Shown in pieces: positions 14,261 to 19,360 of a DNA stretch of 64,000 bases. Every line of letters begins with the position of its first letter. Position 1 is the stretch's first letter. The position numbers and the translations under genes were made by a program. The stretch spans positions 248,001-312,000 of the IMG/VR virus record IMGVR_UViG_3300029893_000001; one strand, 5' to 3'. The notes beneath the pieces are model-generated. The model searched no databases, was not told where the DNA came from, and saw only the letters and a list, made by a program, of their open reading frames with translations.

Positions 14261-14956
14261 ATGAAGTTTCGCCTCCTTGCAGAAATGGGCTTCAAATCTA
14301 AGGTCGTGAAGCCGAACAAGTCGACGGAACGAGAGCTGAAGAACGCTCTGCGGAAATACATCCTCGACAACGACAAGGAAGCACTAACCGATCGTGTTGA
14401 GGGAATACTGTATCTCCTCGAACACGGAAAGTACAAGCACCTCATCGATCCCAGCCCACACGAATGGGCGTGGCGATTCATTGATGCAACAACTCCCAAA
14501 AAGCTTGAAAGCATCATCGGAAGAAAGCTGAAGTCGTCCAAAACGAGCCTCAAACTACCTCCGGGTACTCTGAATCCAGATGACCGCGGTCTTAGCAGTT
14601 GGACCGTTAATCCCAGGTCTCTCGTCTACAGCGGGTTCTTCAGTGTAGTCCCAAAGAACAGCAACTTGGCCTTGGTAAAAGCCAAGATTTCTGAAAACAG
14701 GTTCTTTGGGAACCCAGACGATTTGGTGAAACACCTAAAGTTCCCTAAGAAGTACTACGCCCCTGGGTACGCATTAGAGAGGGAAATTGTGGCAGTAGGT
14801 CCAGTTAAGTACGAAACTGGTGCATATCAGATGAGAGACAAGTCAAGAAGTCTCGAAGCTCAGGCGGTAGATCTTATCAACTTCCTAGACCCGCTGAACA
14901 ATAAAGCCGAAGAGTGGAATGAAGAGTATTATTTCCCGAACCTATGGGATGAATGA
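14261..14956 (+). CDS. Hypothetical protein
   Basis: Long ORF; 'LSSWT...EREIVAV' is only faintly reminiscent of ADP-ribosyltransferase motifs, so not called. Confidence 0.7.
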   Translation: MKFRLLAEMGFKSKVVKPNKSTERELKNALRKYILDNDKEALTDRVEGILYLLEHGKYKHLIDPSPHEWAWRFIDATTPKKLESIIGRKLKSSKTSLKLPPGTLNPDDRGLSSWTVNPRSLVYSGFFSVVPKNSNLALVKAKISENRFFGNPDDLVKHLKFPKKYYAPGYALEREIVAVGPVKYETGAYQMRDKSRSLEAQAVDLINFLDPLNNKAEEWNEEYYFPNLWDE

Positions 14957-16581
14957 TGCCTACAATAGCTATATCAAACACAACAAAAAATACCATATCA
15001 ATTGGATCGGTTATAGGGGCACTTAAACCAGGACAATCAAAAGTTTTAGAGTTAACAAGTGATGAATTAGAAAAAACACGAGAGCGCCTGGTACGACTAG
15101 AGAGTCTAGGCAGTATATCGGTAGAAGTTCTGTCAAACTCTGACTCACAAACTGCACCTGCGGCCAGAACCTATGGTGATGTTCACCTATATGTCGATGC
15201 ATCCACTGGTTCAGACGAAAATTCAGGATCAAAAGATGCTCCACTTGCTTCTTTGGTGGAAGTTGAAAAGAGGGTCCCCTTCTATGTAGACCATCCAGTA
15301 TTCATCCATGTTAGGCCACATCCAGGATCAGGCTATGATCCACCTACGTTCCGTGGAAGAATCTGTCATGCTAACATATATGTTATTGGTGAAGGATACA
15401 ACGTACTAGCGTCTGGCACTATTACCTCAAATCACAATTTGTTCCTGACTGTTGATATTGCGCCTGGTGCAGATGATGCGCTTCGTGGGAAGACGTTGGA
15501 AATCCTTGATGGTCCGCTAGCGACGGAGCGTCGAATACTAAGAACAAATGTCGGTACTGCAATTACCCCGCAGGTTGCATTTTCCACGTTGGTACCGCCA
15601 GGGAGTAAGTATCGCATCACAGAATCGACGGTTATAATCAATGCGCCAACTGGTCCAGCAGCTGATCCGACTCCTTCGCACTGGACTATATCCGAGGGTT
15701 GTGGATACGCGGGATCTGGTTATATCAACTCAGGCTTTAGGCAATCTACGCATGGTCTGGTATTGGTAAACTTAAAACTTCGAGCTACTGACAATATGCG
15801 TGCATCGTTTGCAGGCAATCTGATCATGTTTGGAATAGAGATTATTGGAACAGCCACAATCGCAGCGTTTGCAGGCTCGCAAGGAACATCACATTTGCAG
15901 ATAGGATGTGATACCACATTGCACATCGACGGTATAGCTGCGCGAGCGGCACTGGATCTAGGTGCTAAGACAGGCATAGCATGGGCTGCTTGGGGGATGT
16001 ATTGTACACTGTACCAGCTACACTTCAACAGTCTACAAGGTTTGAATATGCACGGACTCGATGCAGAGCTAGTGGTATTCTGGGGTTGCCATAGGGCATA
16101 TTTAACCGCATTTCGAATAACTAGCGGAATGAAGATATATGGCGAGATACAGAATGGTTCTTGTAACGTCTATGTGGACAGACACACGCAGTTTTTAGGA
16201 GATGCTAACACTAGCAATATTGAAGGATCTCTCGATCCTGTAGTCTACGTATATGGAACTCTAGCGACTTTGCACATCAACTGTAGCATTGTTTCACTAG
16301 CTAATACTACCGCGCTGTATGTAAGACGTGGCGCAAAAGTTGTTATTACTAGCGGAGGTGGTTTGCTCACCTTAGATTCTGGAACCGGTACTGCCGTGAA
16401 GGTAACACAGGGAGCCAGGGTTTGGATTGCAGAAGTACCTGGATATCAAGTTACCACTGTCGGCGCAGTTCAATGGCAAATCGGTACCAAGACACCGCTT
16501 ATTGCTACTGATGATGATTTTGTAGAGGATGGTGACCACGTAACCCATTCTGATGGGTCTCAAGTCATGTGGGTGATCTAA
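14953..16581 (+). CDS. Fibre/spike protein with right-handed beta-helix (paralog A)
   Basis: 'LYVDASTGSDENSGSKDAPLASL' beta-helix cap motif; beta-rich repeats; paralog of 17741-19360. Confidence 0.7.
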   Translation: MMPTIAISNTTKNTISIGSVIGALKPGQSKVLELTSDELEKTRERLVRLESLGSISVEVLSNSDSQTAPAARTYGDVHLYVDASTGSDENSGSKDAPLASLVEVEKRVPFYVDHPVFIHVRPHPGSGYDPPTFRGRICHANIYVIGEGYNVLASGTITSNHNLFLTVDIAPGADDALRGKTLEILDGPLATERRILRTNVGTAITPQVAFSTLVPPGSKYRITESTVIINAPTGPAADPTPSHWTISEGCGYAGSGYINSGFRQSTHGLVLVNLKLRATDNMRASFAGNLIMFGIEIIGTATIAAFAGSQGTSHLQIGCDTTLHIDGIAARAALDLGAKTGIAWAAWGMYCTLYQLHFNSLQGLNMHGLDAELVVFWGCHRAYLTAFRITSGMKIYGEIQNGSCNVYVDRHTQFLGDANTSNIEGSLDPVVYVYGTLATLHINCSIVSLANTTALYVRRGAKVVITSGGGLLTLDSGTGTAVKVTQGARVWIAEVPGYQVTTVGAVQWQIGTKTPLIATDDDFVEDGDHVTHSDGSQVMWVI

Positions 16582-16582
16582 T

Positions 16583-17270
16583 TTAGGTGGGCAAGAGACC
16601 ATCCCAATTACCTCTGATATAGTCCTTGTACCTTATTTTGCGGTCCGTACGATGATCAGTTACTTGTCCGTCTTGCTGACGAATAGTTCTGATCTTATCG
16701 CCTCTCATTCCAGAGCCGATCTGCTCACGACGCTTTGCGCCGCGCTCCTGTGCCTTCTTCGCGACTTGCATCTCGTGGATGCGAGCCCGAAGCAAACGAT
16801 ACGCTAAATCCCGGTTCTGGTGCTGACTGCGCTCGTTCTCAACTCGAACACGTACGCCAGTAGGGATGTGCGTCATCTGAACTGCCGATTCCGTTCGATT
16901 TCTGTGCTGTCCGCCAGCGCCAGAACCTCGGCAGGTTGTCCACTCAATGTCCCGCTCCTCGATGTGGAGTGTAGTCTCTGAGGGCTCCTCTAGCACAGCT
17001 ACGGTTACCGTTGAAGTTTGGACTCGTCCGCGCTTCTCGTTCGGCGGGATTCGTTGCCAACGATGGCCTCCCGCCTCCAACTCAAATGTCTTCTTTGCTC
17101 CCTTTCCACTCGCCTGAAAACTCAGAAATCCAGGGCGTTCCTCAATGAGGGTACACTCAAAGTCCCCTCCGGTCCATCAGCTTGGCGTAAATTCCAAACT
17201 GCTCATGAACCAAGGCCTTCGCATCGTCTCCGCCCTCTCCAGCACGGATCTCCACAATTACGTTTTCCAT
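16583..17270 (-). CDS. Class I peptide chain release factor-like protein (228 aa), lacking domain 1, expressed via +1 programmed frameshift
   Basis: Frame 0: MENVIVEIRAGEGGDDA...RRGL-TGA (17270-17157). The +1 frame continues ECTLIEERPG...EAGGHRWQRIPPNEKRGRVQTS...GSGAGGQHRN...VTDHR, including the GGQ motif. Confidence 0.88.
17156..17171 (-). promoter_or_regulatory. prfB-type +1 frameshift cassette CGGAGG-GGA-CTT-TGA-G
   Basis: Internal SD (GGAGG) 3 nt before CTT-TGA, the same geometry as bacterial RF2 AGGGGG-TAT-CTT-TGA-C. Confidence 0.85.
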
Positions 17271-17271
17271 T

Positions 17272-17724
17272 TTACCCTTCCCAACGAGTACAACACCCGT
17301 AGAACTGAACCTTAGCTCGGTATACTGGTGTGTTATCGTTCTGTTTCGCGACAACAGCACAAAAGCCGGTATCGGAGTTCGCTTTCGACGGGGTGAAGTG
17401 GGCACAGTTCCCACACATTGTCCCCTCAGAGGGGATGTCCGTCTCAAAACCAGATGTTTCGGGCGATACTTCTTGAATAGTACCGTGATTTGGAAGTTCC
17501 TGAAGTGAGCGTAGTGGGCGTCCAGTGACGTGATATCCGCACACAGCGTTCCCAGGAACGCTAAGATCTTTCGGCAGGATAGCACACCTTTCCTCGGCTC
17601 GTGCCCACATAAAGCAATTGGCGCACTTACGTCCTTGCTTCTTCAAGGCTCCTTCCATGGGCTGCACATAAAGCACGGACCAAGGCTCAGGGACCACTCT
17701 GAGAGGTAGCTTCATCTTGGGCAT
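17272..17724 (-). CDS. Tandem HiPIP-like cysteine-rich (putative Fe-S) protein
   Basis: Two C-x-N-C...C...C repeats: CANC..RCAIL..VCGYH and CGNC..GFCAVV..GCCTRW. Confidence 0.55.
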   Translation of the reverse strand: MPKMKLPLRVVPEPWSVLYVQPMEGALKKQGRKCANCFMWARAEERCAILPKDLSVPGNAVCGYHVTGRPLRSLQELPNHGTIQEVSPETSGFETDIPSEGTMCGNCAHFTPSKANSDTGFCAVVAKQNDNTPVYRAKVQFYGCCTRWEG

Positions 17725-17740: not shown

Positions 17741-19360
17741 TTAGGTGGTGCGTTGAATTATCGAGTTATCTGACGCTACGATTGCATCCCCGTTGTTAGG
17801 GATGTCAACGAGAGCCGCTACTGTTGGGACTGGTCCAATCTCTAACTGGTTTCCAGACGCACTGATTCCTACCGCAGACCGAACCTGAACGCTAGATCCC
17901 TCTGTTGCCTTTACACCGGTCACAGCAGTAATACTCACACCCTGAAATAGTTGCGCGTGAGCGCCTTTTTCCAGGCGTACGCCAGTACCTGTAGTAGACG
18001 TAACATACGCCTCCACTAGATAAACGCGAGCACCTACCCCCAGTGCTCGAATCGCGTCGCCTGTCTCGTTGTGAACGTACAACTGTAAGTCTGGGAGGTA
18101 CTGCTTGCCATCAATGCGAGCAACGGACGACTTCAACGTGCCGAAAACAGTGATACCTCCAGTGTGGATATTTCCACCCCGGAATTCTACGTCAGAGTCA
18201 AATATCGACATGCTAGAAGCGACCAACGCGTAGAACCAAACACTATTTGTCAGGCTTATCGTGAGGCCCTGCGCGCTAAGACCCCAGCCGACCCAAGCTT
18301 TAGGGTGCACTCCAGCAAGGCGGGTACCAACATTTGCCAGCTCTTCATAGATCTGATTTTGTGGAGGTCCGGAAATCTGATCGATCGCCACCGCTACGCT
18401 TCCGCCGGTAAGAATTACGGGTGCAGCAAATTCGCACCCGAATATCCGAGTATTGCGTCCGCAATGGATATGCTTTGTGGCTCCGCTATGAACGAACTTG
18501 AAATTGACAAACTGAATTCCTGGGCGGGTTCTACTATCCCCGTTGAACCCATAGGTCACGTCGTCTCCTCGACTGCCCTCTATTTCCCAGTAGTTTAGGT
18601 GGGGTGTCTGATCGAGATTGATTTGTGTAACGGGCTCAACAATCCGAAAGCTGTCGCCTGGAGCGATCGTAGATCCCTCCCACAAACAAGCAGGGATGAT
18701 GTCGGTGTCTGTGTTTGTTTTGATAGTACGACGGTACGTGGCCGCTAAGCCCGACAAGACCTCAATCGTCTTGCCTCGATACGTATCGACGCCCAACCCT
18801 GCAGGTGCTACGCACTTCGTGTGGAGCGTACCTGTCTGCGCAGTCGAGGGCCCGAACAGAACATTCAAACCGTCGTTGTTTGTCCCGCCAGAATCAGCAA
18901 CGATGTCAATTGTACTACGCAGCACTCTGGGCCGGAAATGCGGAGGAGCGTAGCCAGCCCCAGCGTGAGGGGCTACGTGGACGACCACAGGGTGTGCAAC
19001 GAAATCTGGAATTCTACTTTCGGCTTCGATTAGTGTCGCGAGCGGCTCATTTGGCGAGTGGCCGTCATTGGTGTCCGAACCCCTCACGGCATCTACCCAG
19101 ATGTCCATCCGGGCAAACGTTTTTGTGGCGCTGTACGCAGCAATGGCAAAGTCGGCAGTGTCACCAACATCCTCTGGATTCTGACGAACAGTCCAATGAA
19201 TTAACTGTTTCTCCTGAAGCTTGTTCAATGAGTCAGAAAGTGCCTCTAACTCCCGAACGTTGATAGACCTCACGAGTGTTTTTCCGGGCCTTAGGATGCC
19301 GAGAGGGACACCAGGGCTAATGCTCTGTTGTGAAATATTCTTGACAACGATTACAGGCAT
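17741..19360 (-). CDS. Fibre/spike protein with right-handed beta-helix (paralog B)
   Basis: 'IWVDAVRGSDTNDGHSPNEPLATL' cap motif; colinear similarity to 14953-16581. Confidence 0.7.
   Translation of the reverse strand: MPVIVVKNISQQSISPGVPLGILRPGKTLVRSINVRELEALSDSLNKLQEKQLIHWTVRQNPEDVGDTADFAIAAYSATKTFARMDIWVDAVRGSDTNDGHSPNEPLATLIEAESRIPDFVAHPVVVHVAPHAGAGYAPPHFRPRVLRSTIDIVADSGGTNNDGLNVLFGPSTAQTGTLHTKCVAPAGLGVDTYRGKTIEVLSGLAATYRRTIKTNTDTDIIPACLWEGSTIAPGDSFRIVEPVTQINLDQTPHLNYWEIEGSRGDDVTYGFNGDSRTRPGIQFVNFKFVHSGATKHIHCGRNTRIFGCEFAAPVILTGGSVAVAIDQISGPPQNQIYEELANVGTRLAGVHPKAWVGWGLSAQGLTISLTNSVWFYALVASSMSIFDSDVEFRGGNIHTGGITVFGTLKSSVARIDGKQYLPDLQLYVHNETGDAIRALGVGARVYLVEAYVTSTTGTGVRLEKGAHAQLFQGVSITAVTGVKATEGSSVQVRSAVGISASGNQLEIGPVPTVAALVDIPNNGDAIVASDNSIIQRTT

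Follow-up and report, generated by a model that had tools for sequence, protein, structure and literature searches.

A predicted programmed +1 frameshift in a compact, RF1-derived release factor gene of huge phages

Among release factor genes, programmed frameshifting has hitherto been seen as the distinguishing mark of prfB alone. A survey published in 2025 and covering 12,753 genomes detected none in prfA, and the gate codon of prfB, viz. the in-frame stop codon at which the reading frame shifts, was TGA in 98.6% of cases and TAA in about 1%, with TAG in 0 of 8,164 (PMC12421855). A gate that is nearly always TGA and never TAG is a signature of self-regulation. Counterparts of the prfB frameshift in RF1 genes were described as unknown in a review from 2016 (PMC5009743). 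Homologues of RF1 and RF2 have been reported from huge and alternatively coded phages (Al-Shayeb 2020, PMC7162821; Borges 2021, 10.1101/2021.08.26.457843), and a giant-virus release factor gene which requires both readthrough and frameshifting is cited in the 2016 review (Atkins 2016, PMC5009743).

The gene described in the present work lies on the minus strand of a 64,000-nucleotide stretch of DNA (positions 248,001 to 312,000 of the IMG/VR virus record IMGVR_UViG_3300029893_000001), the whole of which is referred to below as the window. A sequence-only reading of this DNA had proposed that it belongs to a phage and that the gene encodes an RF1-like release factor gated by a frameshift of the prfB type. 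The phage origin agrees with the large terminase and portal genes found in the window and with its location on a 392-kb IMG/VR contig.

The predicted frameshift site resembles that of prfB in its SD-like element, 3-nt spacer, CUU_U and stop codon in a poor context, in the shortness of the upstream ORF (ORF0) and in the encoding of the protein in the +1 frame; as in prfB, members that are in frame are scattered through the family of compact factors to which the gene belongs. Unlike prfB, the compact factor is an RF1-derived paralogue which lacks domain 1 and is borne by phages, and its site is located at codon 37/38, after the decoding helix of domain 2, whereas that of prfB is at about codon 26 in domain 1. 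The gate codons of the compact family (TGA 72%, TAG 23%, TAA 5%) also differ from those of prfB and are mismatched to the specificity predicted for the product. Bacterial RF1 (prfA) provides the best match in both sequence and fold, and PCRF, RF-1 and GGQ are all present; unlike bacterial RF1, however, the compact factor is without the domain 1 of ~105 residues, its loops are shortened and it carries substitutions of its own. It shares with PrfH (RF-H) the character of a class-I release factor homologue of ~200 aa lacking domain 1, but it falls below the cutoff of the PrfH model TIGR03072, has no RtcB partner and possesses decoding elements of the RF1 type.

The RF1 and RF2 homologues of huge phages are similarly encoded in very large genomes together with tRNAs and tmRNA, although the passages on release factors that were located in those reports record their presence only, with no frameshift, truncation or gate codon. 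The giant-virus gene, as it is cited in the review, is also a viral release factor gene whose expression needs recoding at stop codons; unlike the compact factor, it is eukaryote-type, belongs to an amoeba virus, uses different signals and is confined to a single lineage. No description of the compact family or of its frameshift was found in the searchable literature, and within that literature this would be the first conserved programmed frameshift found for an RF1-type gene. The phage family would break both of the patterns seen in bacteria, in that the prfB cassette is found in an RF1-derived gene, at new positions and with TGA, TAG and TAA gates.

The gene in the window and its predicted product

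Re-reading of the minus strand has given the same coordinates, the same ORF0 of 37 codons and the same total of 228 amino acids (aa) as the sequence-only reading (Table 1). The end of ORF0 reads CGG (17171-17169), AGG (17168-17166), GGA (17165-17163), CTT (17162-17160) and TGA (17159-17157), followed by G (17156). Skipping of T17159 opens the frame from 17158 to 16586, and the junction of the predicted +1 product, 228 aa in total, is ...RRGL-ECTL... In Pfam, ORF0 corresponds to positions 100-134 of PCRF and the +1 piece to positions 154-194 of PCRF together with RF-1 (E 1.6e-31); as these positions are consecutive, the two pieces represent colinear halves of one release factor.

Table 1. Features of the release factor gene and of its putative frameshift cassette (positions are those of the window).
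Feature	Position	Strand	Basis or remark
Candidate RBS GAAGGG for ORF0 (likely)	17275..17280	-	Read from sequence
ORF0, start of release factor domain 2	17160..17270	-	ATG 17270..17268, 37 sense codons
EIRAGEGGDDAK helix within ORF0, counterpart of RF1 alpha5 tip		-	Pfam/NCBIfam placement
G-G-D-D codons at helix tip	17223..17234	-	Family compared with RF1
Internal SD-like GGAGG, 3 nt (GGA) 5' of shift codon	17166..17170	-	Direct reading
CTT shift codon	17160..17162	-	Kept in 71/71 distinct genes
In-frame TGA gate codon, followed by G (17156)	17157..17159	-	Direct reading
+1-frame ORF, 191 codons (remaining domain 2, GGQ domain 3, domain 4)	16586..17158	-	
P-P-N tripeptide where RF1 has the PxT 'anticodon', QRIPPNEKRGRVQTS loop	17039..17047	-	
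GGQ catalytic motif (GGC GGA CAG)	16907..16915	-	Invariant in family alignment
Terminal stop TAA of +1 frame	16585..16583	-	

The ORF upstream of the gene (17272-17724, minus strand) encodes 150 aa, is Cys-rich and has a weak HiPIP-like match in Pfam (E 6.8e-06); its TAA (17274..17272) is located one base ahead of the ATG of the release factor gene. Two paralogues of ~540 aa whose sequences are clearly similar (14953-16581 on the plus strand and 17741-19360 on the minus strand) flank the release factor gene and this upstream ORF in divergent orientation. They have in common the motif ...GSD.N.G....PLA.L.E.E.R.P..V.HPV..HV.PH.G.GY.PP.FR.R, and neither of them matched anything in Pfam or PHROG.

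The RF1-like character that had been ascribed to the gene is upheld by the NCBIfam scores of the +1 piece, which were 198 bits for prfA, 132 for prfB and 90 for prfH; the ORF0 piece matched the prfA model at positions 112-146 with 22 bits. All of these scores are below the cutoffs of their models, those for prfA far below the equivalog cutoff of 423 bits, which is due to the missing domain 1; the prfA matches begin at position 112 of the model. The PrfH model TIGR03072 gave 90.3 bits compared with a cutoff of 166.65, and the ArfB model gave 40.9 bits compared with a cutoff of 100, domains 2 and 4 being present here, unlike in ArfB, which has a GGQ domain and a C-terminal tail. Over domains 2-4 the window gene is ~45-50% identical to bacterial RF1. 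For the fold comparisons, the window protein was represented by a natural in-frame homologue (P0016) that is 69% identical to it. A sequence search of the PDB with P0016 likewise favored RF1 (4e-49, covering RF1 residues 86-307) over RF2 (1e-27) and PrfH (1e-13), and the AlphaFold (AF2) model of P0016 (pLDDT 90.6) matched domains 2-4 of ribosome-bound RF1 from T. thermophilus and E. coli with TM 0.90-0.91 and an rmsd of 2.2 Å, compared with a TM of 0.65 for PrfH.

The absence of domain 1, which had also been read from the DNA, is borne out by the range of RF1 that is matched and by the start sites of the whole family. Every member starts 3-7 codons ahead of the EIRA helix, hence the loss of domain 1 is a trait of the family. 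The frameshift site had correctly been placed after the EIRAGxGG helix, and it aligns to RF1 position ~146, a location that is not used by prfB. Our phylogenetic tree separates the family, as a clade with 99% SH-aLRT support, from the bacterial RF1 sequences that served as outgroup. By these sequence and model comparisons, the predicted product is an RF1-derived release factor that lacks domain 1 and has an intact GGQ motif.

We have also compared the decoding positions of the family with those of 118 bacterial RF1 sequences, using family positions which we take to correspond to the codon contacts of RF1 in published termination-complex structures. The family retains GGQ, the Gln preceding the tripeptide, the GR(V/I)(H/Q)TS motif and most of the RF1 decoding positions. 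The second D of the helix tip stands where RF1 has a Glu, this residue being D in 94% of the family and E in 100% of the 118 bacterial RF1 sequences. The tripeptide is most commonly PPT, followed by PPN and then by SPT and others, with PPN present in the window; tripeptides of the SPT type may relax specificity. Other family-specific substitutions are GGHRW in place of the GVHRV of RF1 and GMRGDK in place of its GDRSER. The residues of the RF1 type suggest that the product may read UAA and UAG, a prediction made less certain by the family-wide change of Glu to Asp and by the presence in the window of PPN instead of PxT.

Conservation of the predicted frameshift site and identity of its gate codon

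The sequence-only reading had named a sequencing error or a unique inactivating indel as the outcomes that would overturn it. Logan contigs from two sequencing runs on subsurface metagenomes, each belonging to a different study (word depths of 38x and 26x), are identical to the window and free of indels; with two assemblies identical across the site, the extra base is not a sequencing error. In X6, a third and independent sample, no contig extends across the frameshift site, and it was given no weight. The homologues also speak against a unique indel, as the cassette of SD-like element, CTT and stop codon is kept in them at this site.

Homologous DNA was drawn from viral, genome and metagenome collections and the frames of the two pieces were compared by tblastn. 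A +1 shift beside CTT and a stop codon, at one and the same position of the alignment, is needed by 77 of 84 loci from the viral and genome collections, and a further 26 loci from metagenome contigs require the same shift at the same site. Removal of duplicates left 92 distinct genes that require the frameshift, almost all of them on huge-phage contigs and some as little as 46-50% identical to the window protein. Each half of the gene shows conservation at the protein level in its own frame, which is indicative of purifying selection. Transcriptional slippage was rejected as a source of the shift, as no homopolymer at the site exceeds TTT.

Selection is also evident at the silent sites of the cassette, for which statistics were obtained from 71 distinct genes of the viral and genome sets. 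The Leu codon at the shift site is CTT in every one of these genes, whereas elsewhere in the same genes CTT accounts for 16% of Leu codons. Arg codons at the site are CGG or AGG, the spellings that give GGAGG, in 97 of 106 instances (92%), compared with 27% elsewhere in the same genes, and GGAGG at the 3-nt spacing is present exactly in 38 of the 71 genes and with at most one mismatch in 50. The base 3' of the gate stop is C in 51 genes, G in 15, A in 5 and T in none (n = 71), whereas the base 3' of the terminal stops of the same genes is T in 33, G in 20, A in 13 and C in 5 (n = 71). Judged from its sequence, the predicted site has the anatomy of the prfB recoding site, in which an SD-like element is separated by 3 nt from CUU_U and a stop codon follows in a weak context. 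The conservation of the shift at the same site and the selection on synonymous codons exclude a chance origin, and on this comparative evidence the frameshift is almost certainly programmed. Rare variants of the shift site were seen on metagenome contigs (TTT TAG C in L180 and CCT TGA C in L183), and a further member (L174) has CTT TAG T, the only gate stop at this site to be followed by T.

Our protein search retrieved thousands of relatives of ~190-230 aa, and many of their annotated N-termini are spurious, representing the upstream piece read in the +1 frame. ORF callers divide the gene in two, and the database cluster that holds the window's own protein is a 137-aa fragment. A blastn comparison of the region with 50,697 annotated phage records gave no match, and PHROGs contains a full-length RF1-like family and RF-1-domain fragments only, with no compact family. 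Hundreds of such genes are now called as fragments or with spurious N-termini.

The identity of the gate codon bears upon what the site senses. The 92 distinct genes that require the frameshift have TGA (66 genes), TAG (21) or TAA (5) at this position, and TGA and TAG gates switch between close relatives, with at least 4 changes forced by well-supported branches of the tree. Across the family, no association was found between the gate codon and the tripeptide, the H/Q position or the helix-tip residue. It was also not associated with the GC content of the locus (Mann-Whitney p = 0.81), and the flanking genes of TGA-gated and TAG-gated groups showed no clear difference in stop codon usage. The sequence-only reading had interpreted the cassette as a sensor of UGA termination by host RF2. 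The architecture that it recognized is indeed that of prfB; however, as the gate is TGA, TAG or TAA and varies without change of the decoding residues, sensing of RF2 cannot be the general rule. The window itself combines a decoding motif of the RF1 type with a TGA gate, whereas TAG would be expected in a self-regulating RF1-like factor. Because of this mismatch, the loop may be open (responding to whichever factor of the host reads the gate codon, RF2 in this phage) or the specificity of the factor may be altered.

The cassette is also found at other positions. Two members that form the clade sister to all others (L053 and L192) have it in a leader of 8 codons with which the gene begins (MTNTRRSL-stop with AGG AGG TCT CTT TGA C, L053:2820-2870; MNKFGRYL-stop with GGG AGG TAT CTT TAG T, L192:1335-1385), and the whole factor lies in the +1 frame after the leader. 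In a contig of a Hydrogenophilales metagenome-assembled genome (MAG) (L084:2985-3015), the usual site is in frame and CTT TGA C is located ~10 codons downstream, with GGAGCGGGGG upstream of it; this cassette may either have moved or have arisen a second time. In five other members (L011:2991, L040:2994, L051:2991, L074:2988 and L231), a TGA or TAG occupies the usual gate position in frame and the same frame goes on beyond it; none of these five has an SD-like element there. Two of them, L040 (TGA) and L051 (TAG), are sister taxa. These in-frame stops could be overcome by readthrough or local suppression. With regard to recoded genomes, the flanks of these members end their genes with all three stops and give no hint of recoding, and no suppressor tRNA was found within 3 kb, in a test that is weak as it covers only ~6 kb per locus. 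An in-frame stop arrangement of this kind was known for no bacterial release factor gene at the time of the review by Atkins et al. (PMC5009743). Lastly, three members (L080, L082 and L163) have no gate and are nested among gated members, and in-frame members are nested inside frameshifted clades in the tree. The variety of positions, codons and in-frame forms argues that it is the gate as such, and not its exact place or codon, that is maintained by selection.

A proposed termination-speed gate and alternative explanations

The main reading of these observations is as follows. A ribosome translating the 37 codons of ORF0 would arrive at the gate with CUU in the P site and UGA in the A site, and its anti-SD would pair with the GGAGG located 3 nt upstream. 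Prompt reading of UGA by a release factor would set free a peptide of 37 aa, and none of the compact factor would be made. If decoding of UGA is slow, the peptidyl-tRNA-Leu would slip from CUU to UUU and translation in the +1 frame would yield the 228-aa compact class-I release factor, which consists of domains 2, 3 and 4 of the RF1 type and would supplement termination in the infected cell. UGA is normally read by host RF2. Given this choice between slipping and release, the output of the factor would be inverse to the speed of termination at the gate codon. We assign a probability of about 0.62 to this reading, namely that the cassette is a termination-speed gate of the prfB type and that the product is most likely a stop-codon-dependent peptidyl-tRNA hydrolase within a phage translation module. 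We infer from the sequence comparisons that frameshifting takes place and responds to release factor activity, and that the 228-aa product would be active.

A closed loop, in which a compact factor of broadened or changed specificity reads its own gate, UGA included, in the manner of prfB, is possible but has a clearly smaller claim than the reading just given. The switching of the gate among all three stops in close relatives while the decoding motif stays constant would be accommodated by such a factor, as would the family's changes at decoding positions (Glu to Asp, PPT/PPN/SPT and the H/Q variation). TGA is also the commonest stop of the window phage, ending 36 of its 70 long ORFs, so that a factor blind to UGA would serve only half of them, which makes a UGA-blind supplement somewhat odd, although as evidence this is weak. 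Against a closed loop, most of the residues that define RF1 are retained, namely the Gln ahead of the tripeptide, GR(V/I)(H/Q)TS and, in the majority of members, Pro-x-Thr. As a tentative extension of the same idea, the cassette might be a portable 'termination-speed sensor' that phages have built into one gene family more than once, at three positions and with each of the three stops, an in-frame stop serving instead in some members, and the compact factor might have lost the restriction of RF1 and read UGA as well; if true, this would be a bacterial virus with a single self-regulating, near-omnipotent class-I release factor that takes over termination in the infected cell.

It is rather improbable that the site acts as a fixed-ratio attenuator, at which a shifty stop sets a low and nearly constant output of a factor whose excess would do harm. 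Ungated over-expression of a release factor is toxic in B. subtilis (PMC12421855), and any stop codon would serve in an attenuator, fitting the variation among TGA, TAG and TAA; however, the weakest stop context (a next base that is never T in 71 genes) and the SD stimulator maximize competition with termination, a weak RBS would be a simpler route to a low constant yield, and shifty-stop sites are inherently sensitive to release factor concentration, as in prfB (PMC5009743).

A role in the rescue of stalled, non-stop or damaged ribosomes, similar to PrfH or ArfB and perhaps directed against host defense nucleases, is unlikely; ribosome rescue as such had been offered as an option by the sequence-only reading. 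The absence of domain 1 is shared with PrfH, a phage tmRNA adjoins the gene in three loci, and one subclade has NADAR, SLOG and DSP-phosphatase neighbors, which are typical of conflict systems. However, the PrfH comparisons are poor (90 bits against a cutoff of 167, 1e-13 in the PDB search and a TM of 0.65), the RF1 elements for reading stop codons are conserved, and no RtcB, conserved protein neighbor or other rescue context was found among the flanking genes. That the gene is a pseudogene, a sequencing error, a unique indel or a split gene with its downstream part made from an internal start, as its division by ORF callers and the 137-aa fragment of its own database cluster might suggest, is hardly credible in view of the identity of two assemblies, the more than 90 distinct genes with the same shift, the purifying selection in both frames and at silent sites, and the presence in the upstream piece of the decoding helix that a functional factor needs.

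If the gate does sense termination speed, the family offers a natural experiment on whether such a gate responds to the termination capacity of the cell or to the product itself, and the compact factor of 228 aa, without domain 1, is a subject for studies of specificity and RF3-independence. The termination-speed gate also suggests that huge phages may adjust their supplementary translation factors to demand, beyond merely carrying them.

Genomic context and distribution of the family

The viral collection contains 268 relatives, most of which are located on contigs of 100-600 kb. From 185,579 species-representative genomes, 80 loci were kept, of which 77 are ordinary prfA and 3 are members of the family. 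These three are on bacterial MAG contigs assigned to Sandaracinaceae (L083), Hydrogenophilales (L084) and Nannocystis (L094), and they could be hints of hosts. The neighbors of L083 and L084 look cellular (LysR regulator, DsbA, EAL), hence phage contigs are not the sole location of the family.

Phage tRNA genes are located within 3 kb of the release factor gene in 31 of 60 loci in one scan and in 3 of 8 in another, and the gene is often found inside phage tRNA arrays on the same strand (e.g. L013, L030 and L060). A phage tmRNA adjoins it in three loci (L013:3557-3908, L024:2106-2464 and L077:1555-1914). The recurrence of tRNA arrays and tmRNA points to a translation-supplement module, and the suggestion of the sequence-only reading that the factor counters a host translation shut-off finds no support in this context. 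In the clade of the window (L001-L008), no tRNA genes were found within 3 kb. No anticodon for a stop codon was present among the ~280 tRNAs listed, a few of which were without a standard anticodon according to ARAGORN. Clustering of the flanking ORFs over 84 loci revealed no conserved protein neighbor, and Pfam and PHROG scans of the flanking genes detected no RtcB. In one subclade (L030:2066-5156 and ~10 related loci), genes for NADAR, YAcAr-SLOG and a dual-specificity phosphatase (DSP) adjoin the release factor gene, and in other loci HNH endonucleases are found beside it.

Unusual tRNA-like genes of 75-78 nt, with an enlarged anticodon loop and no long variable arm, were observed ~2-2.6 kb upstream of the frameshifted gene in three loci (L014:392-469, L033:1333-1407 and L020:865-942). 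ARAGORN assigns a 4-base anticodon, UAAG, to those of L014 and L033 and reads AAG in their close relative L020; with the anticodon as called, the UAAG genes would pair with the CUU shift codon. In an exact-pattern scan, UAAG tRNA-like genes were present in two viral contigs only. A further locus that is outside the compact family (L213) encodes a full-length RF1 of the bacterial type in which an in-frame TGA takes the place of the Trp codon of the RGW motif, and it is most likely derived from an organism in which TGA specifies Trp (code 4).
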